Below, one piece after another: positions 20,255 to 43,642 of a stretch of DNA of 43,642 nt. Origin of the DNA: Octopus sinensis. Taxonomy: Eukaryota. A program made the position numbers and the translations under genes. A model generated the notes under the pieces. The model did not search any database, was not told where the DNA came from, and was given only the letters and a program-made list of their open reading frames with translations. The stretch covers positions 1-43,642 of the forward strand of contig NW_021834987.1 of the NCBI RefSeq assembly GCF_006345805.1, given 5' to 3'. Position 1 is the first letter of the stretch; each line of letters starts with the position of its first letter.

Positions 20255-20602
20255 TCTCTAGAAAAATGACGACGCTGTGGTGATCTCATTCTTGCTCACA
20301 ACATCATAAGCGGAAAGTGTAACCTCTCAAAAGATCTGTTCTTCACTCCTGCTCCAGAGCATCGGCTGCGGGGTCATTCCGAAAAGCTCTATATGCGACG
20401 ATTTCATCTCAATCGAAGGAGAGGGGCTATCTCCGTCCAGGTTGCAGATCCGTGGAATAAGCTGCCGACGACCACTCGGTACAAAGTCTCCCTTGACCAC
20501 AAATGGCCTGAACTCTTGCATGAACACCCTCCCTGTACATAACTCCATGTCCCCCTACATGGCCTTGCTTTTTGCTTTTTGAGCCAAAAAATTAACTTAA
20601 CA
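20255..20602 (+). mobile_element. Tandem second copy of the CR1 3' end
   Basis: Near-identical to 19857-20225. Confidence 0.8.
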
Positions 20603-22399: not shown

Positions 22400-22663
22400 T
22401 CAATTAATTTTCAAGAATTATCTACTTGCGTTTTATTTAATTTGTTCGAAAAATATTATTTAATTTGTGTAAAAAAAAATTATTTCATTTTGTTCATAAA
22501 CAGGTAACACGCAGTGTGTAAAATAATTATTTTATTTAGTTCATAAAAAGGTAACGCGCATGTGCAAATGAACTCATTTGCATACGCCCAAGTCATAGTA
22601 TCGACCACGTACGACTAGCTTGCGTGTCGCTGCGCAACAAGACCAGTATGTGCTAGTAGTACC
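22400..22663 (+). mobile_element. Merlin right-end fragment (TIR ...GACCAGTATGTGCTAGTAGTACC)
   Basis: TIR matches the family; subterminal AT-rich sequence resembles 34600-34848. Confidence 0.65.
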
Positions 22664-23293
22664 ATAATGCTTCGCCTTGAGAATTGTTTACCTTGAAAGC
22701 GAAAATACAAGACCAACATATACAACAGGTATGTAAAACATACCTGTTGTATATGTAAAGCATTTTATTAAAAAAAAAAGCATTCTTGAAGACTAAACTA
22801 GACAGTATAATACTGCCTAACGCATCTTATGAAATTCATAAAAGCAGTCTCTGTTTTATCACCGCCAACTAAACTTGGACAGATATGTTGAAAACAACAC
22901 ACCTGATTATTGATTGGAAAAAAAAAAAAACCCGAAAAAGTTAAAAATTAGGAGGCAGAAAGAGAGTTAAAATTTTAAAAATGTAGATTTTTGCATATTC
23001 AGAATCTCCATCATAGAAAGCTCAGTTCCGGGAGGCTGACTCCACTAGTTCCACCTAGTAACTTAAGGTGTATTGATCACAGAAGGCATGGAACACTACT
23101 TATTAGTTCCTGAAATATTGGTAACTATCATTAACATACGAAATATAATCTGATAGCAGCAAATAGAATGGTTTTTCACTACTCTCACTTCACTCAAAAA
23201 TGCTTCTCGCTTTCTCACTCTTCCCCAAAACGCCAATCAAAATACTCATCATCAGAACTGCAAACAAAAAGCGTGGTGCAGACAAATTCTGTT

Positions 23294-23606: not shown

Positions 23607-26600
23607 TGGAAGTGCTACGTGATGGGACAGAGAGCGTTCAACATGCTGGCGAATGACTTCCGAAATGATGTGTGCCCATCCAGGATGAGCAAAGAAGATG
23701 CCCTGAAAGATGTGGAAAGGAAGAGCACCAGCACGCCGATTCCATGGACCCAGGAGGCAGAAGAGACGGGTTCCCCCCGTCTGCCGGACCCAGACGAAAC
23801 AAGGTAAGTGAATTATGGCTGTATAAATGTGCGCAGCCTGACATCGAACTGGAAACAAGGCCGTTTACTAAATGATGTCAGGTCGCAGAATTTAGACGTA
23901 ATTGTAGCTACTGAGACGCGAATCGAAGGGCCAAGAGATCTACTCCCGCTCCTGGATGGCTACGAGAAATATACTTCTGGCCAGCAGTGGGGTGTTGGTC
24001 CTGCTGAAAAAAGATAGAGTCTCAGAGAAAAAGTTGATTTTTTCTGATTCAGAAGGTAGGCTGGTCGTCTTAGATCTGACGTTCAGTTGTGGTAAAAAAA
24101 TCAGGCTGGTAGCGGTATACGCACCTAATTCGAGTCAGACGGATTTTTATCGAGACCTGGAGAAGTTTCTTGGCACGTCAAAATCCATAGTCATGCTAGG
24201 GGACTTTAAACATCATAGTCGATGCGCGCGTCGATGGCGTTGGCTCAAAAGATAGAAAACCAAACCTTGGCTTCCGGGATCTACTGAGTCGCTTCCAGCT
24301 GGTAGATCCCTACAGACTTGAATTCCTGAACGCTCCACAGTGGACGTGGTCAAATAGCGACGGGTCTGTCAGGTCCTACATAGACAGAATTCTCATTAGA
24401 AAAACAGATAAAGGATTAGTTAAGTGTCCACAGTTTCACCTGGTCAGTTACAGCGACCACAAGATGGTCACTGGCGAACTGAACCTAGATAAGATATGTA
24501 GTAAGGGATTCGGCTACTGGAAACTCAATAAGTCCCTTCTGGCTATTGAGGAATACAGAAACCGGATCGAGTTATTAGTGCAGAGGGCGTTAACCGGTTC
24601 CATTATTAACAATAAATGGTGGTACGCCCTCAAAAGAGCCATCAAATACGAGTCCATTAGATGCAGCATAGGTCTAGCAACTAGTGGGCGTAGGAAAGAG
24701 ATAGGGCTAGTTAAGGCCTTAGAGGAGCCATGAGAGCTGGCGATGGAGCCCAAGTTAGGCTGAAGAAACTGGAGTTGAACCAGCACCTCGAAGCCAAACA
24801 TATGGGTTGTATCGTCAGAGCTAGAATTCGCGCAATGGGGTGCGAGGGTATTAAGGCTGCCGGATGGGCACGAGTTGTGGAGGCCAAACGTGGAAACGAT
24901 TCCACAATTAAGTCTGTGACGAACGGGCGAGGCGATGTGATTACTGAACCAGAGGAGATGTGTCGGACGTTTCAGGAGCACTTCGCTCAGCTCTTTGGGG
25001 GCGACGGCGGGCCGGAGGAGAGGGTGGACCTAACGGACATCCTCGCCGGGTTGCCGCGCCTCTCGGGCCAGGACGTGGAGAGCTGTGAAGCGTCGATCTC
25101 GCCTGAGGAGATAGCTGAGGTCCTGGTCGACTGCGGTGAAGGCAGGGTGCCGGGGATTGATGGTTTACCTTACGAGCTATATAAAAGAATGCCAGACTTG
25201 TTCGGGAACGTGCTGACCGGCGTCTTTGCGAACTGGCGACAGAATGGGTTCATTCCCAGATCTGTACGTCGGGGAGTGGTGACGCTGATCAGAAAGGACC
25301 CGAGCAAGGGGGACAACATAGACAACTTTCGGCCATCACACTGCTAAACACAGAGGTGAAGATTTTGGCCAAGGTGCTAGCGAAAAGGTTGACGCGTGTT
25401 GCGGGTGGTCTGATCGGTGAGGCACAAACGTGTGCGGTCCCTGGAAGAACCATCCAGGATAATCTTCACCTAGTACGCTACACAATAGAGAGGTTTGGGA
25501 ATGACTCTGGCAAAGGTGGGGCATTGGTCCATTTAGACCAGAGTAAAGCGTTTGATAGGGTGAACCATCGGTACCTGGTGTCCATGCTGGCGCAGTTCGG
25601 TCTGGGCATTGGCTTCCTCATGTGGATCATACAGTTGTACAATAACATCGACTCGATTGTTCGGGTGAATGGCTTCTTTTCGAAGCCGTTCCGCATCAGA
25701 CGGCCTGTTCGTCAAGGGACTCCGCTCTCCCCAATTTTGTATGTGATGGCTCTCGAGCCACTGCTGTGAAAGCCGAGCGCCATCCCGACGAATCCAGGAG
25801 GTGGAGGATCTGTGACATCGTATGCGGACGACATCACCATCATCGTGACCGAGGTGGAACTCCTACGTAATGTGGGAGATGCCATCAAGGCTTACGAGAC
25901 GGCGACAGGAGCAAAGATTAACCGGGAAAAATTGGTCGGCTTGCAACTCGGCACGTCGATGCCTTCGAATAGCATCGTGGGTTGCTGGACGGAGGGCCCG
26001 GTTAAGCTGCTAGGGATCTGGTTTGGTCCAGATATCCAGATAGAAAAGAACTGGTCTGAGGTGATGAGCAAGGTGGCTATCCTTGAAAGGGAGGGAGGGC
26101 GGAGGTGGCCAATGTGTTTTTAGCATCGGTCATCACCTACTGCCTGACCGTCGTCCCTTGTCCGGATTCGTGGTTAAGCAAGTTGGAGAGGAAGATCTTC
26201 CACTTTTTGTGGAAGGGAAACACTCCTCTTGTAAGACGTTCTATTTGCTGTCAGAAACTGTTAAAGGGTGGGTTAGGGATGCCTTGGCTGTTGATGCGCT
26301 GAGGTTAGGGCATCTTTGGCCCTACCTGGATGGTGAACGGGTGTGGTCCCCACTTGCGAGGCAGATGATCCCCAGCTTTGCCAGTTTCAGTGGCAGAGAA
26401 ACCAGGTATCGTCGTAGACTTAGATCGAGCATGTGGTATTCAGAGTGCCACAGGGCACTCTGCCACTTCCGCAAGTCAGGCAATACCGGCAGCTTTCTAT
26501 AGCAGGTTGGTAGAGGCCGGAAATGACGATGCCTTGGGAAGGACCTTGGGCCTCGATCGAAATCAGTTAGACAGTCTGTTCCGAAGGACGTTCGGGCCGA

Positions 26601-27346
26601 AGACATTGGATAACTTCCAGAAGTCTTTGACCTGGCAATGTTTCAGAGGGGCTTTATCCGTTCGGGATAAACTCACAAGGCATGGTTGGAGTGGACCATC
26701 GAACTGCCCAAGATGCGAGCGGGATCTGGAAACAGTCTCGCACGCTATTGTTCAGTGTCCGGAAGTTTCGGACGTGTGGGTATATGCCGAACACCTGTTG
26801 TCGGATGGAAGAAGAGTACAGCTATCGGCTGAGACAATTATAAAAATTGACTCGCCTAGCTTTTTGACAAGTGAAGGTAAGCATTGCTTTCTCAGTACAG
26901 TAGCAGTAGCGAAAGAGTGTATATGGAAGACTAGAATGAAAGTTGTAAAGACAGGCACCATGATCTCTGGCTCCGCCTTGGTGACCTATTTCAGGTTCCA
27001 CCTAAAAAGAAAGGTGGAGTTAGAGAAAAGGTGTCTGTCTGCGTGTGAGTTCGACAAAATATGGAACCGTGTGGCACGATTGCTGCGAGTGAAAGGGGCC
27101 ACGTGAACATACTGTAAGTTGGCTGCCGAGTTTCGGTGGGAAAAACAGGGCTCGTGGGGTCGGCAATCCTGGTGTTCCCACTTCATGTGTTCCTTTTATG
27201 TCGTGCTGTTGTTAAAAACATTGTGTATCATTCGATTTCTTCGATTTTGTGTAAACATTTTTATGTAAATTTCATCTGTATCTCGTGACCCCAAATCATG
27301 ATGTGTTGTCCCCTTCTTCGTTGGCCCCTTGTGGGTAATAAAGAAA
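23607..27346 (+). mobile_element. Tx1/L1-clade non-LTR retrotransposon copy 1, 5'-truncated, ORF2 disrupted
   Basis: ORF1 tail, APE (GCINVRSL, ATETRI, GDF), RT (PGIDG, QSKAFD, RQGTPLSP, YADD), C-terminal CPRC...H...C; 3' AATAAA. Confidence 0.92.
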
Positions 27347-30300
27347 TAGGTGAACCCGATAGGATGTGTATTTTTTTCGGCTCGTGAAAATTTTGTCAGT
27401 GTATTCTACTACCAGTTGTTATTTGTGAAAGATAAAACAAAAAGAAAAAGCAAGTTGTTTTTTGAATTCGTTAGTCGAATTTATTTGACTAATATTAGTG
27501 AAGCCGCTGAGGAGGGGTAGGCCAATAATGGCCAGCCCGAAGGCGGACAGAACGGAAGACCAAACCCAGGTCCTGAGTCCAGAGATGTCCAGCCTAGAAA
27601 AAACAATAGCTTTACCCGACATTTCCTCGGACGAAGAGGAAAGTAGGGGAATCAGAAGAAATATAGATGTGCCAAGCATGGCAAAGAAAGCGCTAAACTT
27701 CGCCGAGGCGGCTAGCCCAAAAGAAAGAAAGATAAACCTGACCAAGTTGGAAGAAGTGAAAAAGATAGTATCCCGAAACGGGTATAAAATTAAACTGAAC
27801 CAGGCGCAAGAATCTCTCGAAGAGATAGAGAGAAAGACGATAATATATAAAACATATCGTAATAAGGAAAGGAGAATAGACTTTTCTTCGGAAAAGGAAG
27901 TGGAGGCTTGCTTACTACCCATCTGGGAAAAAATTACATTTTTAACCAGGGGTAAGAGATATGGTACCGTGGAAACCAGGTTCAGAACAGAGGAAGAAGC
28001 AAGGGAGCAGTCCATGCAACCCCTGAAAACAGATACAATAACCCTTCTACCTATTTATAGAGGAAGGCGCATTTCAAGAATAACAATTGCTAACATACCG
28101 CCAGAGGTTGAGCCCGAACTAATAGTGGCTGGAGTCACTGCAGGGCTGGGAGAAAAAATAGAAATTCGCGATGCCATGGTGGAAGACGCCAAAAAGTGGC
28201 AAGGACAGAGAGTAAAGATTATTATACAGGCCGAGGCGGACGTCTTGGAAGAGATAGGCGAGGTTATCGAGATAGGAGAGAGCCGGATGGCAGTAATGGT
28301 GGAGGGCCGGAAGCCCAGGTGTTTCACCTGTGGCAAGAAGGGCCACATCAAGAAAGACTGCAAGCCGGCGGAGAAGGAGAAGAGCGAACCCACAAAGCCA
28401 AGTTCTCAAGTGGCGGTAACAGAAACAACACCTGCAACAGAAGTAGGGGAGGGGTGGTCACAGGTTGCTGCTACAAAACGAAAACACAATAACCCCTCCC
28501 CGGAGAAAACCATAAGCAAAAAGAAGAGAGAAGTGAAGAAAGCGAAGAAGCCGGAGAAGGAAAACAAGGTGTATGTTGCGATGAACACCGCAAACAGAGA
28601 AGTGATGCGTAGAGTGGAGACACAACACATCGAGGAGGTGGAGATGGAAGTGAGATGTAGAGACTGGAGATGCTACGTGATGGGACTGAGAGGGTTCAAC
28701 ACGTTAGCAAATGATTTTAGAAAAGATGTAGGCCCATCCAGAATGAGCAAGGGGGATGCCCTGAAGGATGTAGAAAAGAAGAACAGCAGCTCGCCGATTC
28801 CACGGCCCTCGGAGGCAGAAGAGATGGGTTCCCCCCGTCGGCCGGACCCAGAGGAAATAAGGTAAGCAAACTATGGCTGTTTACGTTGGTTGTATAAATG
28901 TGCGCACCCTGGTAGCGAACTGGAAACAAGGTCGTTTACTAAACGATATCAGGGCGCAGAATTAAAATGTAATTGTAGCTACTGAGACACGAATCGAAGG
29001 GCCAAGAGATCTACTCCCGCTCCTGGATGGCTACGAGAAATATACTTCTGGCCAGCAGTGGGGTGTTGGTCCTGCTGAAAAAAGATAGAGTCTCAGAGAA
29101 AAAGTTGATTTTTTCTGATTCAGAAGGTAGGCTGGTCGTCTTAGATCTGACGTTCAGTTGTGGTAAAGAAATCAGGCTGGTAGCAGTATACGCACCTAAT
29201 TCGAGTCAGACTGATTTTTATCGAGACCTGGAGAAGTTTCTTGGCACGTCAAAATCCATAGTCATGCTAGGGGACTTTAAACGTCATAGTCGATGCGCGC
29301 GTCGATGGCGTTGGCTCAAAAGATATAAAACCAAACCCTGGCTTCCGGGATCTACTGAGTCGCTTCCAGCTGGTAGATCCCTACAGACTTGAATTCCCGA
29401 ACGCTCCACAGTGGACGTGGTCAAATAGCGACAGGTCTGTCAGGTCCTACATAGACAGAATTCTCATTAGAAAAATAGATAAAGGATTAGTTAAGTGTCC
29501 ACAGTTTCACCTGGTCAGTTACAGCGATCACAAGATGGTCACTGGCGAACTGAACCTAGATAAGTTAGGTAGTAAGGGATCCGGCTACTGGAAACTCAAT
29601 AAGTCCCTTCTGGCTATTGAGGAGTACAGAAACCGGATCGAGTTATTAGTGCAGAGGGCGTTAACCGGTTCCATTATTAACAACAAATGGTGGTACGCCC
29701 TCAAAAGAGCCATCAAATACGAGTCCGTTAGATACAGCATAGGTCTAGCAACTAGTGGCGTAGGAAAGAGATGGGGCTAGTTAAGGCCTTAGAGGAAGCC
29801 ATGAGAGCTGGCGATGGAGCCCAAGTTAGGCTGAAGAGACTGGAGTTGAACCAGCACCTCGAAGCCAAACATGGGTTGTATCGTCAGAGCTAGAATTCGC
29901 GCAATGGGGTGCGAGGGTATTAAGGCTGCCGGATGGGCACGAGCTGTGGAGGCTCGACGTGGAAATGATTCCACAATTAAGTCTGTGACGAACAGGCGAG
30001 GCGATGTGATCACCGAACCAGAGGAGATGTGTCGGACGTTTCAGGAGCACTTCGCTCGGCTCTTGGGGGGGCGACGGCGGGCCGGTGGACATTACGGACC
30101 TCCTCGCCGGGTTGCCGCGCCTCTTGGGGCAGGACGCGGAGAGCTGTGAAGCGTTGATCTCGCCTGAGGAGATAGCTGAGGCCTTGGCCGACTGTGGTGA
30201 AGGTAGGTCGCCGGGAATTGATGGTTTACCCTACAAGCTATATAAAAGGATGCCAGACTTGTTCGGGAATGTGCTGGCCGGCGTTTTCGCGAACTGGCGG

Positions 30301-32366
30301 CAGAATGGGTTCATTCCCAGATCTGTACGTTGGGGAGTGGTGACGCTGATCAAAAAGGACCCGAGCAAGGGGGATAGCATAGACAACTTTCGGCCCATCA
30401 CCCTGCTAAATGCAGAGTTGAAGATATTGGCCAAGGTGTTAGCGAAAAGGTTGACGCGTGTCGTCTGATTGGGGAGGCACAAACTTGTGTGGTCCCCGGA
30501 AGAACCATTCAGGACAATCTTCATCTAGTACGCTACACCATAGAGGGATTTGGGAATGACTCTGGCAAAGGTGGGGCACTGGTCCATTTAGACCAGAGTA
30601 AAGCGTTTGATAGAGTGAACCATCGGTACCTGGTGTCCGTACTGGCGCAGTTCGGTCTGGGCATTGGCTTCCTCATGTGGATCATACAGTTGTACAATAA
30701 CATCAACTCGATTGTTCGGGTGAATGGCTTCTTTTCGAAGCCGTTCCGCATCAGACGGCCTGTTCGTCAAGGGTCTCCGCTCTCCCCAATTTTGTATGTG
30801 ATGGCTCTCGAGCCACTGCTGTGAAAGCCGAGCGCCATCCCGACGAATCCAGGAGGTGGAGGATCTGTGACATTGTATGCGGACGACATCACCATCATCG
30901 TGACCGAGGTGGAACTCCTACGTAATGTGGGAGATGCCATCAAGGCTTACGAGACGGCGACAGGAGCAAAGATTAACCGGGAAAAATTGGTCGGCTTGCA
31001 ACTCGGCACCTGGAGGGGCAAGTCAATGCCTTCGAATAGCCTTCGTGGGTTGCTGGACGGAGGGCCCGGTTAAGCTGCTAGGGATCTGGTTTGGTCCAGA
31101 TATCCAGATAGAAAAGAACTGGTCTGAGGTGATGAGCAAGGTGGCTATCCTTGAAAGGGAGGGCGGAGGTGGCCAATGTGTTTTTAGCATCGGTCACCAC
31201 CTACTGCCTGACCGTCATCCCTTGTCCGGATTCGTGGTTAAGCAAGTTGGAGAGGAAGATCTTCCACTTTTTGTGGAAGGGAAACACTCCTCTTGTAAGA
31301 CGTTCTATTTGCTGTCAGAAACTGTTAAAGGGTGGGTTAGGGATGCCTTGGCTGTTGATGCGCTGAGGTTAAGGCATCTTTGGCCTACCTGGATGGTGAA
31401 CGGGTGTGGTCCCCACTTGCGAGGCAGATGATCCCCAGCTTTGCCAGTTTCAGTGGCAGAGAAACCAGGTATCGTCGTAGACTTAGATCGAGCATGTGGT
31501 ATTCGGAGTGCCATAAGGCACTCTGCCACTTCCGCAAGTCGGGCAATACCGGCGGCTTTGGTACCACCGCAGCTTTCTATAGCAGGTTGGTAGAGGCCGG
31601 AAATGACGATGCCTGAGGAGGACCTTGGGCCTCGAGCGTAATCAGTTAGACAGCCTGTTCGGGCCGAGGACATTGGATAACTTCCAGAAGTCTTTGACCT
31701 GGCAATGTTTCAGAGGAGCTTTACCCGTTCAGGATAAACTCACAAGGCATGGTTGGAGTGGACCATCGAACTGTCCAAGATGTGAGCGGGATCTGAAAAC
31801 AGTCTCGCATGCTATTGTTCAGTGTTCGGAAGTTTCAGACGTGTGGGTATATGCGGAACACCTGTTGTCAGACGGAAGAAGAGTACAGCTATCGGCTGAG
31901 ACAATTATAAAAATTGACTCGCCTAGCTTTTTGACAAGTGAAGGTAAGCATTGCTTTCTCAGTACAGTAGCAGTAGCGAAAGAGTGTATATGGAAGACTA
32001 GAATGAAAGCGGTAATGACAGGCACCATGATCTCTGGCTCTGCCTTGGTGACCTTTTTCAGGTTCCACCTTAAGAGAAAGGTGGAGATAGAGAAAAGGTG
32101 TCTGTCTGTGTGCGAGTTTGACAAAAGATGGAAACGTGTGGCACGATTGCTGCGAGTGAAAGGGGCCACGTGAACACGCTGTATGTTGGCTGCCGAGTTT
32201 CAGTGGGAAAAACAGGGCTCGTGGGGTCGGCAGTCCTGGTGTTCCCACTTCATGTGTCGTTTTTATGTCGTGCTGTAAAAATTTGTGTATCATTCGATTT
32301 CCTCGATTTTATGTAAAATCATGTGTTGTCCCCATCTTCATTAGTCCCTTGTGGGTAATAAAGAAA
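27347..32366 (+). mobile_element. Tx1/L1-clade retrotransposon copy 2, near full length, ORF1 open, ORF2 disrupted
   Basis: Same family as copy 1 in head-to-tail tandem; ORF2 from about 28873 (MAVYVGCINVRTL) to 32173 in many broken frames. Confidence 0.92.
27528..28865 (+). CDS. Tx1-clade ORF1 (gag-like nucleic-acid-binding protein with CCHC zinc knuckle, about 445 aa)
   Basis: Open frame from ATG MASPKAD (the track start is an upstream GTG); CFTCGKKGHIKKDC; Lys-rich C-terminal region; directly upstream of the APE ORF2. Confidence 0.85.
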   Translation: MASPKADRTEDQTQVLSPEMSSLEKTIALPDISSDEEESRGIRRNIDVPSMAKKALNFAEAASPKERKINLTKLEEVKKIVSRNGYKIKLNQAQESLEEIERKTIIYKTYRNKERRIDFSSEKEVEACLLPIWEKITFLTRGKRYGTVETRFRTEEEAREQSMQPLKTDTITLLPIYRGRRISRITIANIPPEVEPELIVAGVTAGLGEKIEIRDAMVEDAKKWQGQRVKIIIQAEADVLEEIGEVIEIGESRMAVMVEGRKPRCFTCGKKGHIKKDCKPAEKEKSEPTKPSSQVAVTETTPATEVGEGWSQVAATKRKHNNPSPEKTISKKKREVKKAKKPEKENKVYVAMNTANREVMRRVETQHIEEVEMEVRCRDWRCYVMGLRGFNTLANDFRKDVGPSRMSKGDALKDVEKKNSSSPIPRPSEAEEMGSPRRPDPEEIR

Positions 32367-32629
32367 CAACTGAACCCGGAACCATGTGGTTGGTAAGGAA
32401 GCTACTTACCACACAGCTATCCACTCTTTCTCGAACACATCTCCTCTAAACCCTGCCAACGCTGTTTCCCCGAACACACTTCTCGACAAAACTTGTATTT
32501 TTTTTGTAACTTTCAAATAAAATGATAAAAAAAAAAAAACCATAATTTCATATTGATGTGGGGAAAATACTCCGAAAGAAATCTTTGCAGAAAGGTGAGT
32601 AGATTCATTACACATTTCATTATGTTACT

Positions 32630-33026
32630 CTCTCTTTTACTTGTTTCAGTCATTTGAATGCGGCCATGCTGGAGCACCGCCTTTAGTCGAGCAAATCGAC
32701 CCCGGGACTTATTCTTTGTAAGCCCAGTACTTATTCTATCGGTGTCTTTTGCCGAACCGCTAAGTGACGGGGACGTAAACACACCAGCATCGGTTATCAA
32801 GCAATGCTAGGGGGACAAACACACAAACACATATATATATACATATATACGACAGGCTTCTTTCAGTTTCCGTCTTTGGTAGACGGAAACTGGCATCCAC
32901 TCACAAGGCATTGGTCGGCCTGGGGCTATAGCAGAAGACACTTGCCCAAGATGCCACGCAGTGGGACTGAACCCGGAACCATGTGGTTGGTTAGCAAATT
33001 ACTTACCACACAGCCACTCCTGCGCC
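32630..33026 (-). mobile_element. SINE family A (minus); a separate head fragment lies at 32368-32425
   Basis: Reverse complement of the family A consensus. Confidence 0.88.
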
Positions 33027-33247
33027 TGTTACTGCAGTTTAGTGAGATTTGGCTTTATTTCTAGCATGAAAATAGCCGGCTTGAGGGGGATACATCTCTA
33101 TATTTAAAAAAAAAAAAAATTTTACAAAAAAGTGAAAACTGAATTAATGGGGAGGGAGGGGGGATTTGAATTTTTGAAGTTGCGATTTATAATTATTCTG
33201 TGACAATATAATCTGTACTTACCACATGTGTGGTAGATTTGTTAAAA

Positions 33248-33470
33248 GCTCTACCTGCGACGATTTCATCTCAATCGAAGGAGAGGTGCTTTCTCCGTCC
33301 GGGTTGCGGATCCGTGGAACAAGCTGCCAGACGAGATGGTGAAGATGCCGACGACCGCTTTGTTCAAAGCCTCCCTGGACCTCAAGTGGCCTGAACTCTT
33401 TACATGAACACCACCCTGTACTTAACTCCATGTCCTTGCTATTTGCTTTTGAGCCTAACTAACTAACTAA
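33248..33470 (+). mobile_element. CR1 3'-end fragment
   Basis: Homologous to 19980-20222; (AACT)n tail. Confidence 0.75.
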
Positions 33471-33550
33471 CAAATCTACCACGCTTCTATTTCAAATTTT
33501 TTAACGTTGTCAGTTGTTACAGCAGCCACGTGGAAATTGGTCGAACATCT

Positions 33551-34400
33551 TTATTGCCCAGGATACAAATTCGCAGCTTGCAATAAAAATTCATGAATCC
33601 TTTTGGGGGCAGGGCGGAAAGCTTGCATGAATTGGTACCTAGCAACATATTGTTTTAAGAAACACGGTTTAATTCCAGGCCTTATCACGTTCCTCTTTAA
33701 GCTCCCCCAAAATCTTTCTATTGTCTGTGTATGAATAGATGGGTTTGCTGGATCGACAAAGTTCTGGCTGTGATTTATTTGGAAATGCTTGTAACCCAAA
33801 CTATCTAGCCTATTATATATGGGCCAACAATCGCTATATACAGTTGAACCAGGATGAATGTGGCGTCTGATTAATGGAATCAGTGTGGAAGAATCTCGCC
33901 TTTGAATTTCACAACATTCCGATGTCAGAGGTATCAAAAAATTTTTCTTGGAATCCCTTTCCATTCTGCCAAAAAGCCAAATAGTTTTCACAAGTCTCCC
34001 CCTGTTATATTTCCTCCTAACCAAGACTGTCTCATCTATTTCAACTGCGATCCCTGGCCCTCCAATTGGTGCTTGGGAATTTTCGACCCAATGAAGGCAG
34101 ACTTCAGAGCAGAAAGACCTCCAATCAACAGACGTGGCAAGCGATATATCTAAATTGTCCATAACAGCTTGATGCGACCAACCTTCTGTTAAATGATTTA
34201 TATACAAAAGAATTTTCCATGGGGGTAACCGATTCCACTCCAAAAAGGTGTTCTTAAATATCGAAACCGAAAAACCACATTCTGTTGCCTTTTGTCTTCC
34301 ACGACGATCCATCTTCCTGCAACGAAATACATGTCCCATTTCGTAGAAATGTGAATTGCCCAACATGCAATTCACTGTGTGTTCTACGAAATGGAACAGA
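33551..34400 (-). mobile_element. Merlin/IS1595-family (ISXO2-like) DDE transposase A, N-terminally truncated, D/D/E intact
   Basis: Motifs IGGPGIAVEIDET, GSTVYSDCW, QINHSQNFVDP and HTQTIERFW. The track ORF starts at GTG 34453; the first in-frame ATG is at 34366. Confidence 0.9.
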
Positions 34401-34848
34401 TATATTACTGGAAGAATGCGAAAAGACGATTTAAGATCATGATGGGGGTACACTCCAACATGGTGGAATCGTATCTAGACGAATTTCTGTGGAAGGAGCA
34501 ATAAGGGAAGTGTGGAAAGGAATGTCTTGAAAACATTCTTAAGCACCTTTCCGAACGTTTCACATTCAAGTGAATCAAATGAACTGCAAGAACTGAGATA
34601 TTCAATTTTCTACTTGCTGTTTGCTTTTTATTTACTTCAATTAATTTGTGTAAAAAAATGATATACATAAAAATTTTTTTAAAAATCTTTGTTTATAAAA
34701 AAAAATATTTACTTCGTTTCCAAATATGTATCGCGCATGCACCAATCTATTCATTAGCATATGCGCAAGTTGTAGGATCGATTACTTATGACCAGCTAGC
34801 GAGGATGCAGGACTGAGCGTACCGGGACCACTGTTCGCTAGTAGTACC
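34400..34848 (+). mobile_element. Merlin lineage C: transposase C-terminal fragment and right TIR
   Basis: 34403-34572 reads YYWKNAKRRFKIMMGVHSNMVESYLDEFLWKEQ*...LENILKHLSERF. It ends ...ACCGGGACCACTGTTCGCTAGTAGTACC at 34848. Confidence 0.8.
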
Positions 34849-34859
34849 GAAATACTTTG

Positions 34860-34865
<6 letters not shown>

Positions 34866-34920
<55 letters not shown>
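34866..34920. repeat. (TA)n microsatellite; others at about 22016-22047, 37110-37132 and 39686-39706, with (TG)n at 11038, 12550 and 40988
   Basis: Direct reading. Confidence 0.95.
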
Positions 34921-34923
<3 letters not shown>

Positions 34924-34972
34924 TGGGGAAAAAAAGAAAAATCGCCCCCCACGAATATATACAATCAAGATT

Positions 34973-35828
34973 TTAAAATCTTGCAATCCCCGCTAACAGT
35001 TTTTCAAAAAGATCGCAACCTTCGTACCTTTTGCGCCACATAATTTCACAGAGACCGGAGTCAATCATAGAACTCTGCTTAACACAGGCCCAAGGGCCTT
35101 CCATCCGTGGCGACTTTGACTTTGACTTAGACCGAGCACCGTGCTTCTCTGCTTTATGGCGAAATTGATAACCCTCGATCTCCGGAATATGAGAGTAAGA
35201 TCTCCACAGATCACTAATGACCGTGGTTCCGGGGAGAACCGATTGGCGGATGCATTCTTCGAGTGTGTCGCGATCCCGACATGTTATTGTATAGAGAAAA
35301 ACCTGCTTGGCCTTGCGACACACTCCTTTATAGACCCACTGGTGGGGCGGCCGACCTCCAAGTCTACATTTCCTCCTCGAGAAGACTGTCTCGTCTATCT
35401 CGACAACCTTCCCAGGACCACCTATCTGAACTGGGTTGAAGAGTAAGTCCTCTGCACAGACTTCTCTTAAACAGCTGGTGTAGTCAACAGCTGCAGTGTG
35501 ACTCACACCCAGCTCTTCATAACAATAACGTATCGTGGTCAGCTTCTTCACCCAAGAATACAAGAAAAGGAGGATAGTTCGCAGAGGAAGCGAGGTGCCT
35601 TCCAGCCATGTACCTTTCCTAACAGATAGAGACTGGTCACAGCCTTTCCGTGTGCAGCGCCAGCGAACGCTCCGATCTTTCACTTTGCGTTTCATGAAAT
35701 GTCTCTTTTTACATTTTCTTTGGAGGTATTATACCCTTCTCTGCAAAGAAAGCTACCGCATCCGCTTCGGTCCTAATCGTGTTGAACAAATCCATGAGGC
35801 CATGCGGTTTAGTTGCAGCCACAGCCAT
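34973..35828 (-). CDS. Merlin-transposase-derived ORF B (about 284 aa if a +1 A in AAGAAAATGT near 35715 is removed; 240 aa from the ATG at 35695)
   Basis: Upstream frame MAVAATKPHGLMDLFNTIRTEADAVAFFAEKGIIPPKK joins C-KKRH-FMKRK...WRCTRKGC; motifs QIGGPGKVVEIDET, GTTVISDLW, MEGPW, LCEIMWR; no TIRs seen. Confidence 0.8.
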
Positions 35829-36484
35829 ACTTCCTCAATACAACAGTAGGGGGGAAATGCAAAAGTGCAAAGAGACGATCGAAAAGCAAAAAAAAAAAAA
35901 AAAAAAACTACTATGCAACAGACAGCAAACAGAAATAAAAAATATAACAGATTGGGGGAAAATAATCACAAAATTAACATGGGGAAATGTACAAAAGGGG
36001 GCGTTCAAAAAACAAGAAAAAATACAAAAAAAAAACGTGTAATATGAAACAGGTAGGAAACAAAAAAGTTAAATAGAACAGTGTTGGAAATAATTACAGG
36101 TAGTGAGTAAAAATATCCACATATAAGTTAAAAAAATATACAGTCAAATTAAGAACACACCAGAATAATAATGTGCACGTGGTCGTGTTGCTCTCAGATT
36201 ACTATCGCAAACAGTAGGATTCTTCATGCGACAACATGGAATAAATTCTAAAGTACACGTGGTTCTGTTGCTCTTTGGTTACTTTCACAAACAGTAGAAG
36301 GTATCTTCAGGTATTTGTCGATTTGGTTAGAATAATCCAAATGCGACAACATGAAATAAATTCTAAAATACGAAAGCTTGTGAAAAATGTTGACAGTGTT
36401 CAGCGTGAGAATTACACCAGTATATGAAGTTTCAAACAGTTCAGTTTAAAATATATAATCAAAAATATCTGTGAACCAAATTGA

Positions 36485-37005
36485 AGAGATTTAAATTACC
36501 TCTTGCGCATTTCATTCAGCGAAATAAAGCAATGTTTTTTTCTTTCTCTCTGAGGAAATATATTACTGTAACTCAGCAATGTTGTATAGAAGCAGGATTA
36601 TACGTTTGTAGAATATCTTTGCAGAGTCTTTCAAACATGATACATATTGATGATTCTTTAAAAAAAAATACTTTTTAGCCAATTTCAGGCGATTTTCTGA
36701 AAGAATAGGAAAATAATATAAGACATAGAATATGTTTAAAAGGTACAAATTTACGGTACCAATTAATAGTAGTCACGGTGCGCGCACTCGCGATAGTTAG
36801 TCGTGACTAGTCGATCTTTACTTTGTGTTTCTGTTCTACTTTGTTTAAAAAGAATTATTTAGTTTGTGTTTTATTTGTTTCAAATAAAATTATTTACTTT
36901 GCTAGATAGTCGTTGTAGGATCGAGTAGTCACGACTAGCAAGCGCAGATGCGCGTACCGGGACCACGCTTCTTAAATAGTACCCAAATTTACAATTGTTT
37001 TGATA
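36485..37005 (-). promoter_or_regulatory. Orphan ZNF 5' cassette copy 4 (acceptor at about 36697; leader truncated; no finger array downstream)
   Basis: Homologous to 5575-5880 (GAAGCAGGATTATACGTTTGTAGAATATCTTTGCAGAGTCTTTCAAACATGATACATATTGATGATTCTTTAAAA identical to copy 1); interrupted by a MITE at 36755-36983. Confidence 0.75.
36755..36983. mobile_element. Merlin-type MITE (229 bp), same family as 6585-7212, opposite orientation, SINE-free
   Basis: GGTAC...GTACC termini; 9-bp TSD CAAATTTAC at 36746-36754 and 36984-36992; the paralogous empty sites near 5840 and 14412 carry a single CAAATTTAC. Confidence 0.9.
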
Positions 37006-38112
37006 AATTGTAGACGTAAACCTTAAATTATAAATGAATGAGATACAGTAATTATAATAGCGACCCCTGGATATTAAATCCTTAACAAAACTCTATCACC
37101 CTCTCTCAAACATATATATATATATATATATATATTTTATTTAGTTTCAGCTCACGAGCTGTGGCCATGCTGGGGCACCGCCATTAATGTGAAGTTTTCA
37201 CGGCGAAGGTAAAGAATACGCACACCTGGTGTTTAGGAACACGACGAAAACGGGTTGTGCGTTTTCTTTACCCCTGCAAATTGAAACACGATGGGGAGGG
37301 GTCAACGGAATCCAGAGATTTATTTAAGGAATGGATAACAGCTCTCATACGAAAGAAAGAAAGATAATAACTAGGCCTAACTTCGGTATAAGTACCGGAT
37401 ATATTTCAAGAACGTGTTTTTTTTTTATATGGAGGGTTTAGGGTTTAGGAGGAAAGGGTTTGTGTTATCTTCAGAAATGTACACAAAGTCACGTGTGTAC
37501 CTATACCGAAGGTTCGCCAATAATTACATTATTGTGTACCAAAATGCATGCAAATAAAGATAATTATGTGTTGGAGTGATGCAACAAAAAAAAAAAAAAG
37601 GGTTAATACTCACTAATAATCAGACGCCCTTACTCGCCAAAAAGGGTTACGGGTGCGTTTTCTTTACCCCTGCAAACTGTAACACGATGGGGAATTAACA
37701 CGTTGTGCAAATGGTGATTTGTCACGGTTAATTTTAAGTGATATGTGTGTCTAGAAGGAAAAAATCAGCCTCTCGCTACATGTGGTTAACGAACACTGGG
37801 ACGGAGTAAAAATGACGGATTAACTCGTCAACGTCAAAACAGCAACTAAAGTTGACCTCTCCGGTTTTGGCGCTAGTTGCTATGTGTATCCTTCCGCCGC
37901 AAGCTACAAGTGAGCGGAGTAACGTACCCTTGTACGAAATAGTTCGATGCCAGTGTACATAAGTATAACCAAAACTGCAATGGAATATCTAAAAGAAAGA
38001 AGGCTGTGACCATGTATTTTTGTCTTTGTTTAGTGAGATAATTTCTCTTGCACATTTCATTCAGTAAAATAAAATTTTTTTTTTCCTTCCAGAGGAAATA
38101 TTTTACTGGGCC

Positions 38113-38190
38113 AAAATAATTCTATAATTTTATACACACGCTTTCCGTACGTATACGGAAAGCGTGTGTATAAAATAATAGAATTATTTT
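38113..38190. repeat. Hairpin (about 37-bp arms, 4-nt loop), followed by (TTAGGG)2 at 38282
   Basis: AAAATAATTCTAT..TTTTATACACACGCTTTCCGTA-CGTA-TACGGAAAGCGTGTGTATAAAA..ATAGAATTATTTT. Confidence 0.85.
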
Positions 38191-38457
38191 GTATGCTAAT
38201 TGTTTAAATTATTTTCCATTGCTTTAGTTTTTTTTTACACGCGTAACAATTAAATTAATTTAACAATTAAGAAAAAAAAATTTAGGGTTAGGGTTAGTTA
38301 CAGGTTGTTGTCTCAGTTTTAGACGCAGCAAATGATTTTAGCTCAAAAGAGAGCATAGGATTGGTTAAAATTCGAAAAATTAAACTACGTTAAACAAACA
38401 AATTACAATTTTCTCAAGAAAGCCAAGTGAAAATAATGTTTTCTTTTGACACATATA

Positions 38458-38869
38458 GGCACAGGAGTGGCTGTTTGGTAAGTAGCTTGCTAACCAACCA
38501 CATGGTTCCGGGTTCAGTCCCACTGCATGGCATCTTGGGCAAGTGTCTTTTGCTATAGCCCCGGGCCGACCAATGCCTTGTGAGTGGATTTGGTAGACAG
38601 AAACTGAAAGAAGCCTGTCGTATATATGTATATATATATATATATAAGTGTGTGTGAATATGTTTGTGTGTCTGTGTTTGTTCCCCTAGCATTGCTTGAC
38701 AACCGATGCTGGTGTGTTTACGTCCCCGCCACTTAGCGGTTTGGCAAAAGAGACCGACAGAATAAGTACTGGGCTTACAAAGAATCGGGGTCGATTTGCT
38801 TGACTAAAGGCGGTGCTCCAGCATGGCTGCAGTCAAATGACTGAAACAAGTAAAAGAGTAAAGAGTAAA
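38458..38869 (+). mobile_element. SINE family A
   Basis: Same head, body and tail. Confidence 0.88.
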
Positions 38870-39031
38870 ATTCTCCCAGTATACGAAGTTTTAAAGTGTT
38901 TAGTTAACAAGAAATTTTGTTGAAATCTGGCCTTCAAAAGGAAAAGATCCCTTTTCGGTTTCACCAGCAGTTTTTAAAAATAATATCCACGTAACTAAAA
39001 AATTTTAAACTTCGTATACAGGTAGAATGTG

Positions 39032-39460
39032 GGTACTACTAGTAAATACTGGTCCCGGTGCGCGCACACGCGCTAGCTAGTTGTAGGTAGTTGATCCTAC
39101 AACGACTTTTGCGTATGCAAGGAAGTTGATTGGCGCATGCAGAATAAAATAAAAGATTTTTTTTAAAGAAAGTGAATAAATTATTTTTTAAAACAATGTA
39201 TATGATTTTTTTACACAAATCAAATAAAAAGCAAAGTAAATAATTTTTTAAACTTTTAATTTTCTTTTATACAAACTAAGATTTTTTTTTGAAAAGTGTA
39301 TATAATTTTTTTTACACAAATCAAACAAAGTAAATATAAAGCAAATAGCAAATAAAAAAATTGAATATCTCACAGTTCTTGCAATTCGTTCGAAAATGCC
39401 ACCAAACAAAAAAATAAAATGTTGAAGTTCATTTGAGTTCCTCGAATGTGAACCATTCTG
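39032..39460 (-). mobile_element. Merlin right-end fragment, inverted relative to 34550-34848
   Basis: TIR GGTACTACTAGTAAATACTGGTCCCGGTGCGCGC; internal matches to the reverse complement of 34550-34848 (TTGAATATCTC-CAGTTCTTGCA, TTCATTTGA...GAATGTGAA). Confidence 0.75.
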
Positions 39461-39509
39461 AACACACACGCATGCATTTATACATATACACATGGATACA
39501 AATTAAATT

Positions 39510-39853
39510 AGAGATAAAACCACAATTAGGCAAATCAAACAGTGAAAAACATAAACCAAAACATAGAAATAAAATTAATTAATATTAATTAATATAATTT
39601 ACAAAATATATAAAATATAAATTTCAGAATATAATTATAATTTAAAGTTAAAAATTTAAAATTATTAATTTATATTTATAAATTTATATATATATATATA
39701 TATATTTATTTTTTATTTATAAATATAAATTAATAATTTTTAATTTAAATTTAAATAATTTAAATTTTGAATTTTATATTTTATATATTATATTAATTAA
39801 TTTTATTTCTATGTTTTTCACTGTTTGATTTGCCTAATAGTGGTTTTATCTCT
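39510..39853. repeat. AT-rich palindrome centred on (TA)n
   Basis: AGAGATAAAACCACAATTAGGCAAATCAAACAGTGAAAAACATA pairs with TATGTTTTTCACTGTTTGATTTGCCTAATAGTGGTTTTATCTCT. Confidence 0.88.
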
Positions 39854-39949
39854 ATTTGTTTATACTGTAAAATTAGATTTAATCCTAAATCTAATTTTTC
39901 CCTGTAAGTTTGGATTTACTCCCTAATATTATTATATTATATATATATT

Positions 39950-40176
39950 TCTTTACTACCCACAAGGGGCTAAACACAGAGGGGACAAACAAGGACAGAC
40001 AAACGGATTAAGTCGATTATATCGACCCCAGTGCGTAACTGGTACTTAATTTATCGACCCCGAAAGGATGAAAGGCAAAGTCGACCTCGGCGGAATTTGA
40101 ACTCAGAACGTAACGGCAGACGAAATACGGCTACGCATTTCGCCCGACGTGCTAACATTTCTGCCAGCTCACCGCC
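39950..40176 (-). mobile_element. tRNA-derived SINE family D (decayed copies at 11325-11530 and 5915-6420)
   Basis: Minus head GGCGGTGAGCTGGCAGAA...GAGTTCAAATTCC, then GCCTTTCATCCTTTCGGGGTCGATAAATTAAGTACCAG, which resembles a widely shared SINE central domain (recalled, not searched). Confidence 0.75.
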
Positions 40177-40585
40177 TATTATATATATATAACATATATA
40201 TACACACATACACATGTGCATGTGTAACATATATGTGTTCTCTTACATGATGGTTGTGATTGTGCATCGACATCAAATGAGCAGTTGTTAGTTTCCAGTC
40301 TGCATAAAATATGTCCTTGCTTGGAAACAGGTGAGGATTGGTGACAGGGAAGGCATCCAGCTGCAGAAAAATCTCCATCAATGAATTCCATCTGATCCAT
40401 TGAAGCATGGAAAAATGAATTTTAAATGATGATGATTATCATCATCATGATATGCAAAAAAAAACAGTTTGATAGTATTTATTCAGCATTACATGTGTTT
40501 CATTACCTAATAGGAATTACAAACTTTTAGACAAAGAGAAAACATGTAAAATATCTCCTATAAGAAATTCTTCCTATATACATAT

Positions 40586-40980
40586 AGGAGTGGCTGTGTG
40601 GTAAGTAGCTTGTTTACCAACCACATGGTTCCGGGTTCAGTCCCACTGTGTGGCATCTTGGGCAAGTGTCTTCTGCTATAGCCCCAGGCCGACCAATGCC
40701 TTGTGAGTGGATTTGGTAGACGGAAGCTGAAAGAAGCCTGTCGTATATATGTATATGTATATATGTATGTGTGTGTGTGTGTGTGTTGTCCCCCTAGCAT
40801 TGCTTGACAACCGATGCTGGTGTGTTTACATCCCCGTCACTTAGCGGTTCGGCAAAAGAGACCGATAGAATAAGTACTGGGCTTACAAAGAATAAGTCCC
40901 GGGGGTCGACTTGTTCGAGTAAAGGCGGTGCTCCAGCATGGCCACAGTCAAATGACTGAAAAAAGTAAAAGAGTAAAAGA
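40586..40980 (+). mobile_element. SINE family A in the ZNF3 3' flank
   Basis: Absent from the paralogous ZNF2 flank (about 12540). Confidence 0.88.
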
Positions 40981-40984
40981 GAGA

Positions 40985-41018
<34 letters not shown>

Positions 41019-41672
41019 CACAAGTGAGTGTATCCTTGTCCAGATATTATGTGATGTCCGTAAATGGCCATCATGACCGTCATACTTGTGCAGTTGTTCA
41101 TTTCCAGTCCTCTGCGTAAAATATGTCTCACCAGGGAAAATATTTCCTTGCTTGGAAACAGGTGAGGATTGGTGACAAGAAAGGGTACCCAGCCCAGGAA
41201 AATCTCCATCAATGAATTCCATCTGATCCATTGAAGCATGGAAAAGCGAATTTTAAATGATGATGATTATCATCATTGTAGTGATATGGTTCCTCTTCTG
41301 TATGAATGCAGTTATGTTTTAATAATTGATCATTTTCATAGATTGATTTAGCACGAATTAGGTTATGGTCATATCTTTCATAATAATAAGACTGTGTATA
41401 ATTAATACACCATTTTGAAGGAATGATTAACTCTTTCGTTACTGTATTTATTTTGAGATGCTCTGTGTTTCTTCCAATTATTTTAAATATAACAAAGAAT
41501 TTAGTAAAATAATATCGTTATCATTAAGCTAGTGTTAGGAACATAAATTGTGACTAAAATTTGGTGGAAGATTTGAATTCAAAACTTATGAAAAAAAAAC
41601 ATTTACACTAAAAAGCCAGAGCCGGTTTCAGTCAGGTTGGTAACGAAAGGGTTAAGCTCTGATATCAGACCG

Positions 41673-43048
41673 TTATGGTTTCTCCTCTGTATGAATATGT
41701 TTGTATTCAGTCAAGATGCTCTGAAGAGAGAATGATTTACCACAGATATCACAAAGAAATGGTCTCTCCTCTGTATGAACATGGTTGTGTACAGTTAATT
41801 GTTGGTTTGTAGAGAATGCCTTGCCACAGATATCACTCTGGTATGGTTTCTCACCTACATGAACATACCTGTGCATAACTAATTGTTTGTTTTGAGAGAA
41901 TGATTTACCACAGATATCACAATGATATGGTGTTTCTCTTGTGTGTATAAGTTTGTGTGCAGTTAAATGGTATTTTCGACAGAATGATTTACTGCAGATA
42001 TCACACTGATATGGTTTCTCACCTGTATGAATCCGTTTGTGTGTAGTTAAGGTACTGCCAGCAGAGAATGATTTACCACAGATATCACAGTGATAAGGTT
42101 TTTCCCCTGTATGAACCCTTTTGTGCGTAGTTAAGCTACTGTCAACAGAGAATGATTTACCACAGATATCACAGTGATAAGGTTTTTCCCCTGTATGAAC
42201 CCTTTTGTGCGCAGTTAGTAAGTACTGCTAACAGAGAATGATTTACCACAGATATCACAGTGATAAGGTTTCTCTCCTGTATGAACCCTTTTGTGTATAG
42301 TTAAGCTGTTGCTTTTAGAGAAAGATTTACCACAGATATCACAGTGATAAGGTTTCTCTCCTGTATGAATACGCTTGTGTTTAGTTAAGCTGTTGCTTTT
42401 AGAGAAAGATTTACCACAGATATCACAGTGATAAGGTTTCTCTCCTGTATGAATACGCTTGTGTTTAGTTAAGCTTTTGCTTTTAGAGAAAGATTTACCA
42501 CAGATATCACAGTGATATGGTTTTTTTCCTGTATGAATACGTTTGTGTCGAGTGAAGCTACTGTCAACAGAAAATGATTTTCCACAGATATCACAGTGAT
42601 AAGGTTTTTCCCCTGTATGAATACGTTTATGTACAGTTAAATAGATATTTCGAGAGAATGATTTACCACAGATATCACAGTGATATGGTTTCTCTCCTGT
42701 GTGAATGTATTTGTGAGTAGTTACCTCACTTCTTTCATAGAATGATTTATCACAAATGTCACACTGATATGGTTTGTCTCCTGTATGACTACGTTTATGT
42801 ACTGTTAAATAGATATTTTGAGAGAATGATTTATTGCAGATATCACAGTGATATATTTTCTCTCTCGTATCAATTTGTTTATGACTGAATAATTCTGAAT
42901 CTTGACAGACTGATTTATCACAGGTATCATGGTGATTTTGTTTCTCATCTGTATGAATGCATTTGTGTCTAGTGAGTTCACCTTTTTCTGAAAATGACTC
43001 TTCGCAGATGTCACAGTCATATGATGATTTTTCCAATTCTTCCGACAT
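41673..43048 (-). pseudogene. C2H2 zinc-finger gene ZNF3, frameshifted at about 42215 (277-aa truncated ORF; about 457 aa and 16 finger units if repaired)
   Basis: ORF 43048-42215 ends SVSSTY*. The array resumes in another frame ([32 protein letters not shown]...) down to a stop at 41673. N-terminus [15 protein letters not shown]. Confidence 0.88.
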
Positions 43049-43507
43049 CTCTTCAAGAAAAATTTAATGAATCCTTCAAGTTTACGCGTCAATAACTTTT
43101 CAAAAATATTTCTCCTCTCACCAAAATTTATGGATATTTTGCTTCTTTTTGCTTTAATAGTTAATTCCAAACAAATATCACTTCTCTTATATTTCTTCTA
43201 AATGTGATCAATGCCAATATTTAAAAATGTTGCAAATACTCTTTGGAAATCTATCAAAGAATATTTAAAAGAGAAAATTATCTCTTGCACATTTCAGACA
43301 CGGAAGTAAAGAAATGCTTTCTCTCTCTCTCAGAGGAAATATTTTACTGTAATTCAGCAATGTTTTATAGAAACAGGATTATACGTTTGTAGAATATCTT
43401 TGCAGAGTCTTTCAAACATGATACATATTGATGATTCTTTAAAAGTAAAAAATACTTTTTAGCCAATTTCATGTGATTTTCTGAAAGAATAGAAAAAAAA
43501 TATAAGA
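43049..43507 (-). promoter_or_regulatory. Conserved ZNF 5' cassette copy 3 (acceptor at about 43481 and leader)
   Basis: Near-identical to copies 1 and 2. Confidence 0.7.
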
Positions 43508-43642
43508 CACAGAATATATTTTAAATAATCTGAATATTGTTTCTGAAAATTATCTCCATTCACTTTGTGCATAGAAAAGATAAATTTGCTGCTTCAATTC
43601 TCCAGAATAACATTTGTTAAAGGACTTATACACATAAACATC

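Follow-up and report, generated by a model that had tools for sequence, protein, structure and literature searches.

The 43,642-nt window analysed here is an unplaced scaffold of Octopus sinensis (VCDQ01005440.1, assembly GCA_006345805.1) with three C2H2 zinc-finger (ZNF) open reading frames (ORFs), ZNF1, ZNF2 and ZNF3. On its minus strand, a fourth ZNF-type 5' cassette is followed by ORF B (LOC115231085), a gene derived from a Merlin (IS1595-like) transposase, and a preliminary description of the window had regarded the cassette as wired to this ORF. It was found that the arrangement is real, but the wiring of ORF B to the cassette is unsupported: 655 nt of unrelated sequence separate the two, and the annotated coding sequence (CDS) covers ORF B alone in the gene models of both the window and the chromosome. 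ORF B is probably a stranded, catalytically degenerate Merlin gene that rearrangement of a transposon-rich cluster placed beside a ZNF relic by chance. That ORF B was domesticated is possible but unproven. The features concerned are as follows.

36484-36751, minus strand: fourth ZNF-type leader, sharing 86-88% identity with the upstream region of each of the three ZNF ORFs
37965-38039, minus strand: distal conserved block AATCTCACTAAAC...TTTTAGACATTCCATTGCAGTTTTGGTTAT, matching ZNF1 7921-8009 (89-92%) and ZNF2 15854-15886 (88%)
38035-38108, minus strand: second, partial leader copy (3' part) abutting the distal block, recognised by similarity to the other leaders
35829-36483, minus strand: T-rich 655-nt spacer with direct repeats (35851-35970/35981-36098 and 36226-36256/36341-36371)
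34973-35828, minus strand: ORF B, Merlin (IS1595-like) transposase-derived gene LOC115231085 (ATG at 35828, stop at 34973)
35073-35161, minus strand: degenerate third catalytic block of ORF B (KHGARSKSKSKSPRMEGPWACVKQ...), not alignable to the paralogues at the DNA level

The fourth leader has counterparts upstream of the ZNF1, ZNF2 and ZNF3 ORFs (5568-5831, 14140-14403 and 43269-43525, respectively). Alignment of the copies showed that the acceptor-like TTTCAG and its pyrimidine tract are invariant in 4/4; in the fourth copy the motif lies at 36702-36697, where the preliminary description had put it (about 36697). It is followed by about 215 nt of leader before the ZNF homology stops at about 36478-36484, which agrees with the end of about 36485 given earlier. 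The distal block shows the order and orientation that it has in the ZNF1 and ZNF2 units; its existence had been recognised, but its coordinates are 37965-38039 instead of 37960-38030. The fourth copy therewith displays the order by which a local C2H2-ZNF unit is recognised, from distal block to acceptor-like motif to leader, as had been proposed. The partial leader at 38035-38108 shared 76-77% identity with 5570-5644, 14142-14216 and 43271-43349, and 81% with 36500-36568.

The claim that no fingers follow this cassette was also borne out. A tblastn search with ZNF1 detected fingers at 4113-5360, 12839-13960 and 41661-43048 only, and no finger-like sequence that could represent a finger-array exon of the fourth unit was found between 13960 and 41661. 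The finger exon is missing in full, as are some 225 nt from the end of the leader, and the fourth unit is, as far as its sequence tells, a relic truncated inside the leader. Like truncated tandem C2H2-ZNF members, it keeps its 5' part at 86-88% identity, is colinear with ZNF1 and ZNF2 and has received later transposon insertions; unlike pseudogenised members, it was cut inside the leader and lost the finger exon wholly, and has not decayed in place. The ZNF1/ZNF2 homology upstream of the fourth leader runs on across a 229-bp miniature inverted-repeat transposable element (MITE). It was observed that the similarity of ZNF3 and the fourth copy to ZNF1 and ZNF2 begins only about 45 nt upstream of the acceptor-plus-leader, and that a TATATTAT motif precedes this element by about 23 nt. 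Because of these two observations, a core promoter might be equally possible, and the acceptor-plus-leader is no more than a putative exon. A near-perfect palindrome (38112-38191, 38-nt arms, 97% complementary, 4-nt loop) lies directly upstream of the partial leader copy. Upstream of ZNF1 there is a ~250-bp tandem repeat (8465-9163), of which a fragment (38870-39031) occupies the colinear position upstream of the fourth unit.

ORF B starts 868 nt downstream of the cassette acceptor on the same strand, in agreement with the distance of about 870 nt reported previously. The spacer at 35829-36483 showed no relation to the ZNF units or to the flanks of the Merlin paralogues; a 31-nt fragment of it (36416-36446) matched a local repeat family, related to the ~250-bp tandem repeat family. 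The putative 868-nt leader (36696-35829) would contain 9 upstream ATGs if unspliced, and it has no polyadenylation hexamer. A pyrimidine-rich tract plus AG is located just before ATG 35828, where the only AG directly upstream is a weak GAG. At 36490, the sequence AG/GTAATT (slash, putative junction) is donor-like in the fourth copy only, the corresponding sequence of ZNF1-3 being AG/ATAATT. The coding sequence of the ZNF genes starts in the finger exon; because their leader carries no coding sequence, no KRAB-style protein fusion can be expected here, and ORF B is not an in-frame fusion of a host domain to a transposase. Judged from these sequences, a protein fusion between cassette and ORF B would be impossible, and only the donation of a promoter or 5' untranslated region (UTR) is conceivable.

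ORF B matched the Pfam family DDE_Tnp_IS1595 (PF12762), which confirmed its Merlin-like nature, with a borderline score of 27.9-28.4 bits (cut-off 27), compared with 65 bits for a canonical relative (P0005). Its start codon is the native Merlin start, which aligns with the N-termini of the paralogues. In an alignment with 11 relatives, the columns of D146 and D207 were invariant and that of E244 was nearly so, consistent with the earlier statement that D, D and E are kept. The replacement of the typical VNHS.NFVDP..GAHT segment was likewise verified: it is substituted by AEKHGARSKSKSKS in ORF B, and downstream of the E block the protein additionally lacks about 9 residues. A microsatellite-like (AAGTCA)3 was noticed in the core. 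The AlphaFold2 model of ORF B, made with 30 sequences, had a mean predicted local distance difference test (pLDDT) score of 81 and an RNase H-like core. The N-terminal zinc-ribbon plus helical region and the beta-alpha core were predicted confidently, most of the model lying at pLDDT 80-95; residues 229-253 were below 50, with values of 37-44 in the third-block segment. The nearest solved folds were the catalytic cores of retroviral integrases, with weak E-values. Because the conserved third catalytic block is lost, ORF B would almost certainly be unable to cut DNA.

No recognisable terminal inverted repeats (TIRs) had been reported around ORF B, and this held. The repeat search gave no flanking arm pair, and the best gapless 20-mer matched at 15/20 positions, which is the level of shuffled sequence (mean of maxima 14.8). 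As no element ends could be defined around ORF B, no target site duplication (TSD) of 8-9 bp was found there either, no complete scan for TIRs together with TSDs having been made. Since it has no TIRs, ORF B is not mobilisable. An active Merlin copy was rejected as an explanation of ORF B, in view of the missing TIRs, the lost third block and the lack of close copies.

The window matched a chromosomal ZNF cluster on CM016886.1 closely. In the segment 2,957,693-2,978,550 of that chromosome (L001), positions 2168-20858 were 99.56% identical to window positions 43642-24988 over 18.7 kb, and the whole ZNF/ORF B arrangement was also present there. By this identity, the window is a haplotig or a very recent duplicate of the chromosomal cluster. 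Between 34700 and 38300, comparison of the two showed 3 substitutions and some 14 short indels, the majority of which affect single bases; with differences that are mainly 1-nt indels, the window looks like a haplotig. The sole difference within the ORF B CDS was a 2-nt deletion at 35715, where the chromosome reads AAAAGATG and the window AAAATG (in longer context, CCAAAGAAAAGATGTAAAAAG and CCAAAGAAAATGTAAAAAG, respectively). The preliminary description had taken this lesion for one extra A; the actual lesion is the lack of 2 bases relative to the chromosome. The deletion occurs in VCDQ01005440.1 only and is absent from the chromosomal copy, which suggests that the unplaced scaffold has an allelic variant or else an assembly error at this point. 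A frameshift fixed in the species, which had been named as evidence against a host gene, was not what we found, as chromosomal ORF B is open for 285 codons. The apparent lesion of such a locus can thus stem from an unplaced haplotig scaffold and not from the gene itself. ZNF3 is an uninterrupted ORF of 457 codons on the chromosome and is broken to 277 codons in the window.

The frameshift leaves the window copy with an ORF of 240 aa (34973-35695), and its RefSeq protein, XP_036355835.1, has 230 aa (LOC115231085). The chromosomal copy, LOC115225578, is intact, with a 285-aa isoform X1; RefSeq lists two isoforms of it, X1 and X2. Isoform X2 lacks 30 nt (35104-35133) in frame, which belong to the degenerate third block, with the non-canonical ends GG..GA, for which reason we rejected the gap as a real intron. 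A transcript-supported polymorphism is a likelier explanation of the gap, and would imply that reads exist.

The copy number of ORF B was assessed among annotated proteins (5.8 billion clustered). Only the two O. sinensis loci, LOC115231085 and LOC115225578, were more than 54% identical to ORF B; the many dispersed near-identical copies that the preliminary description had named as evidence against a host gene were not seen among these proteins. The next relatives were LOC115225419 (P0002, 54%) and LOC115222964 (P0003, 53%), the latter with counterparts in Octopus bimaculoides (P0004) and Octopus vulgaris (P0038), and canonical Merlin transposases showed 40-43% identity over the full length. 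Members of this octopus clade scored 25.7-37.4 bits against the Pfam model, and the HT of the third block was lost in all. No orthologue of ORF B was found among the annotated proteins of O. vulgaris and O. bimaculoides, although orthologues of P0003 are annotated there. By its sequence ORF B is immobile, single-copy among annotated proteins and without TIRs, as a domesticated transposase would be. At the DNA level, similarity between ORF B and the paralogue loci (L003-L005) was confined to the CDS (68-69% nt); no flank homology was found beyond the CDS on either side, and no ZNF leader occurs upstream of the Merlin ORFs at the paralogue loci. Synonymous divergence from the nearest paralogues was about 1.3-1.5, and the ratio of non-synonymous to synonymous substitution rates (dN/dS) was 0.22-0.29, a value that does not discriminate, being expected for active elements and host genes alike. 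A literature search with the LOC identifiers of these loci found no mention of them.

The paralogue LOC115222964 was found in synteny in O. sinensis, O. bimaculoides (LOC106884119) and O. vulgaris (CAI9738362), at 6001-6891 of each of the loci L004, L005 and L006 (L006 being that of O. vulgaris). Between O. sinensis and O. bimaculoides, dN/dS was 0.48 (from 22 synonymous and 41 non-synonymous differences; p = 0.009 in a crude binomial test); the 888 coding nt contained 0 indels, compared with 5 gap events over 560 nt of the 5' flank. In the comparison of O. sinensis with O. vulgaris, the CDS was 99.1% identical and gapless, and the flanks were 97.4% identical with 26 gap columns. From these comparisons, LOC115222964 appears to be a better candidate for domestication than ORF B. 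At the O. vulgaris locus, an isoform of 183 aa (CAI9738361) is annotated in which splicing connects Merlin residues 1-149 with a degenerate C2H2 finger exon. The intron is canonical GT-AG (AGAG/GTAAAT ... ACAG/AC), and the finger exon lies at ~8732-8836 of L006 (OX597834.1), about 1.8 kb past the stop of the Merlin ORF. Chimeric Merlin-ZNF transcripts are therefore at least annotated in Octopus, though the locus is a different one and the arrangement is reversed; a donor of this type is absent from ORF B.

The interval around ORF B and the ZNF relic was packed with other transposon-derived sequence, including a second Merlin element.

36755-36983: Merlin-type MITE 5'-GGTAC...GTACC-3' with inverted arms, its ends read from the sequence
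34860-34925: (TA)n microsatellite between ORF B and the next element
33551-34848, minus strand: Merlin A element, GG-initiated 5' end GGTACTAC... at 34848, 55 bits to DDE_Tnp_IS1595

The MITE is flanked by a 9-bp TSD, GTAAATTTG, at 36984-36992 and 36746-36754, and both ZNF1 and ZNF2 have a single GTAAATTTG at the matching place, which represents the empty site. It is situated about 50 nt upstream of the acceptor-like motif and belongs to the Merlin A family, its arms sharing 73% identity with the 5' end of that element. Merlin A begins about 125 nt downstream of the ORF B stop. Its ORF A (33551-34453, 300 aa) keeps the full INHSQNFVDP...HTQTIERFW motif and shares 31% protein identity with ORF B; no 3' TIR of Merlin A was found. 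Further terminal fragments of the Merlin A type were observed at 39024-39393 (inverted relative to the Merlin A 5' end), 6584-7213 and 22456-22672. From O. bimaculoides, 191 Merlin sequences have been reported (PMC8101967).

The favoured explanation would run as follows. A local ZNF unit was broken, such that the distal block, the acceptor-like motif and ~215 nt of leader survived and the rest of the leader and the finger exon were lost. A Merlin MITE and fragments of short interspersed elements (SINEs) would later have inserted into this relic. Past the unrelated T-rich sequence lies a complete Merlin transposase ORF with its own start codon, in which the predicted N-terminal zinc-ribbon/helical DNA-binding part seems intact and the catalytic block is lost. 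The two would be adjacent since the cluster is a transposon sink, neither driving the other, and ORF B, if expressed, as its two annotated isoforms suggest, would be a stand-alone protein. Chance adjacency is unsurprising, because a truncated unit must abut something foreign, and in an interval packed with transposons this is expected to be transposon-derived DNA. Several observations weigh against this explanation. ORF B is still open after the synonymous divergence given above, and is single-copy among annotated proteins; an open frame that persists for such a time is not what one expects of a relic long dead. Its two RefSeq isoforms imply transcript support, and paralogue LOC115222964 is open in synteny across three species. 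Moreover, the same-strand order of block, acceptor, leader and ORF, the unique donor-like GT and the lack of a polyadenylation hexamer fit read-through or splicing.

Some of these points would be accommodated if ORF B had been domesticated for a non-catalytic host role, e.g. DNA binding, as part of an octopus-specific clade, with its own promoter and independently of the ZNF relic. We regard this as doubtful, though well worth considering. It is in line with a single-copy, TIR-less gene that is intact on the chromosome, and with a predicted N-terminus and core fold that are confident where the catalytic block is degenerate. The dN/dS of 0.22-0.29 against paralogues also fits, but low values between old paralogues are equally expected from selection while the elements were active transposons. 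Clade member LOC115222964 (syntenic in 3 species, dN/dS 0.48, no coding indels, CDS more conserved than flanks) speaks for it, and so does the proposal that conserved Merlin ORFs without TIRs are domestications in other taxa (PMC8101967); ORF B itself has no annotated orthologue in O. vulgaris or O. bimaculoides, unlike P0003. A relaxed constraint is suggested by the X2 gap, possibly a polymorphism, and by the (AAGTCA)3 of the core; the Pfam score is borderline, and the haplotig copy is frameshifted, if that lesion is real. A wider proposal, which we consider improbable, is that an octopus-specific clade of immobilised Merlin genes in C2H2-ZNF clusters, with LOC115225578 (ORF B), LOC115225419, LOC115222964 and the O. 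bimaculoides and O. vulgaris orthologues as its members, repeatedly exchanged exons or regulatory cassettes with ZNF units. The arrangements that would support it are the ZNF cassette upstream of ORF B and the Merlin-to-finger isoform at the paralogue locus.

That the surviving cassette transcribes into ORF B and gives it a 5' UTR by splicing or read-through seems quite improbable. The order and strand are those of real ZNF units, the acceptor-like motif is invariant, and AG/GTAATT at 36490 is donor-like in the fourth copy only; but the homology break and the unrelated spacer part the cassette from ORF B, and the acceptor-plus-leader is only a putative exon, TATATTAT upstream of it fitting a core promoter equally well. 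The pyrimidine-rich tract and AG before ATG 35828, with no polyadenylation hexamer in between, would suit a spliced leader, but that AG is the weak GAG, the unspliced leader carries its 9 upstream ATGs and the MITE sits about 50 nt upstream of the acceptor. The canonical GT-AG isoform joining a Merlin N-terminus to a finger exon in O. vulgaris shows that Merlin-ZNF chimeric transcripts are annotated in the genus; at the paralogue loci, the Merlin ORFs are not preceded by a ZNF leader, and the non-coding leader rules out a domain fusion of the KRAB-transposase type. It is highly improbable, and speculative, that the interval is a source of small RNAs of the PIWI-interacting RNA type, in which read-through over Merlin fragments feeds Merlin silencing. 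Merlin pieces do occur in both orientations within ~5 kb (the ORFs A and B, the MITE of 36755-36983 and, inverted, the fragment at 39024-39393), and a minus-strand gene model (43048-30588) spans the interval. But mixed transposon debris is ordinary in the octopus genome, and ORF B could not target the TIR-bearing Merlin A family of this interval, since the two are just 31% identical as proteins and not detectably similar as DNA.

The Merlin superfamily comprises eukaryotic relatives of bacterial IS1595/IS1016 (Feschotte 2004, as summarised in PMC8101967), and Merlin transposons were recognised here by TIRs of 24-462 bp starting with 5'-GG and by a TSD of 8-9 bp. ORF B resembles the superfamily in its DDE_Tnp_IS1595 domain, N-terminal zinc-binding region, aligned D/D/E residues and 40-43% identity; it differs in lacking GG-ended TIRs, a TSD and the third block NH..FVD...HT, and no close copies of it were found, whereas the MITE and Merlin A show what bona fide Merlin ends look like in the same locus. 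In ciliates and dinoflagellates, conserved Merlin ORFs without TIRs have been proposed as domestications (PMC8101967). Similarly, ORF B is old and preserved, lacks TIRs and TSDs, keeps part of the DDE and appears to have been copied with its surroundings and not by transposition; unlike those ORFs, it belongs to a cephalopod, and cross-species conservation is known for its paralogue only. Transposase capture has also produced host-transposase fusion genes, e.g. KRAB-transposase genes, among which no Merlin-derived fusion was described, the term being absent from the text (Cosby et al., bioRxiv 10.1101/2020.05.07.082677). As in those fusions, the transposase ORF B lies downstream of host 5' elements on the same strand in a ZNF cluster, and the annotated paralogue-locus isoform joins Merlin and finger sequence. 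Unlike them, the host cassette at ORF B gives no coding sequence, hence no chimeric protein.

As the evidence stands, transposon-rich octopus ZNF clusters yield truncated gene units beside stranded transposase genes. To our knowledge, the Merlin superfamily has no established domesticated member. If the proposed clade and its exchanges with ZNF units were real, no Merlin domestication and no transposase-ZNF capture would have been described in a cephalopod before. If ORF B or its clade turned out to be host genes tied to ZNF units, the range of transposase capture, known from vertebrate KRAB-ZNF loci, would come to include the ZNF clusters that expanded independently in cephalopods.

A CpG-rich patch had been suggested to supply a first exon to the fourth unit.

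37770-37940, minus strand: CpG-rich patch with GT at 37927-37926, not conserved upstream of ZNF1 or ZNF2

The patch proved unremarkable. Its observed/expected CpG ratio was 1.30 at a GC content of 0.43 (window mean of the ratio, 0.73), and several neighbouring 200-nt windows scored higher; it was rejected as a promoter island, not being distinctive among them. A gene annotated on the minus strand, with a product of 233 aa, runs from the ZNF3 ATG (43048) to 30588 inside a copy of a long interspersed element (LINE), its span covering the whole region described here. Neither of two 2-exon reconstructions of this gene model matched a protein in the clustered protein collection, and exact look-up of the reconstructed ZNF3 models, ZNF1, ZNF2 and ORF A gave no entry in it. 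A query of the collection with the ZNF3 N-terminus returned 4 candidates, with no octopus protein among them, and matches to the full ZNF3 ORF were dominated by ZNF proteins from all animals. No exon structure was found in the cephalopod C2H2 literature.

No gene is called for ORF A in the locus tables, unlike ORF B. Merlin A appears to be cut at about 33472-33500 by a LINE-like fragment (33244-33472) plus a SINE, and the Merlin A-type copy at 6584-7213 is also split by a SINE. No tRNA gene, as might relate to the SINEs, was detected by ARAGORN in 32000-41500. A LINE-like retrotransposon is present on the plus strand in two tandem ~5-kb copies (23607-32317; 91-96% identical, spacing about 5060 nt). 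The SINE-like repeat of ~400 nt occurs in 6 copies that are 79-95% identical (2841-3198, 6718-7111, 16977-17333, 32622-33031, 38455-38863 and 40586-40977), and fragments of its 3' tail lie at about 37150-37230. A tandem repeat array with a 24-nt period was observed at 16425-16819, where the GC skew is strongly negative (-0.41 over 16001-17000).

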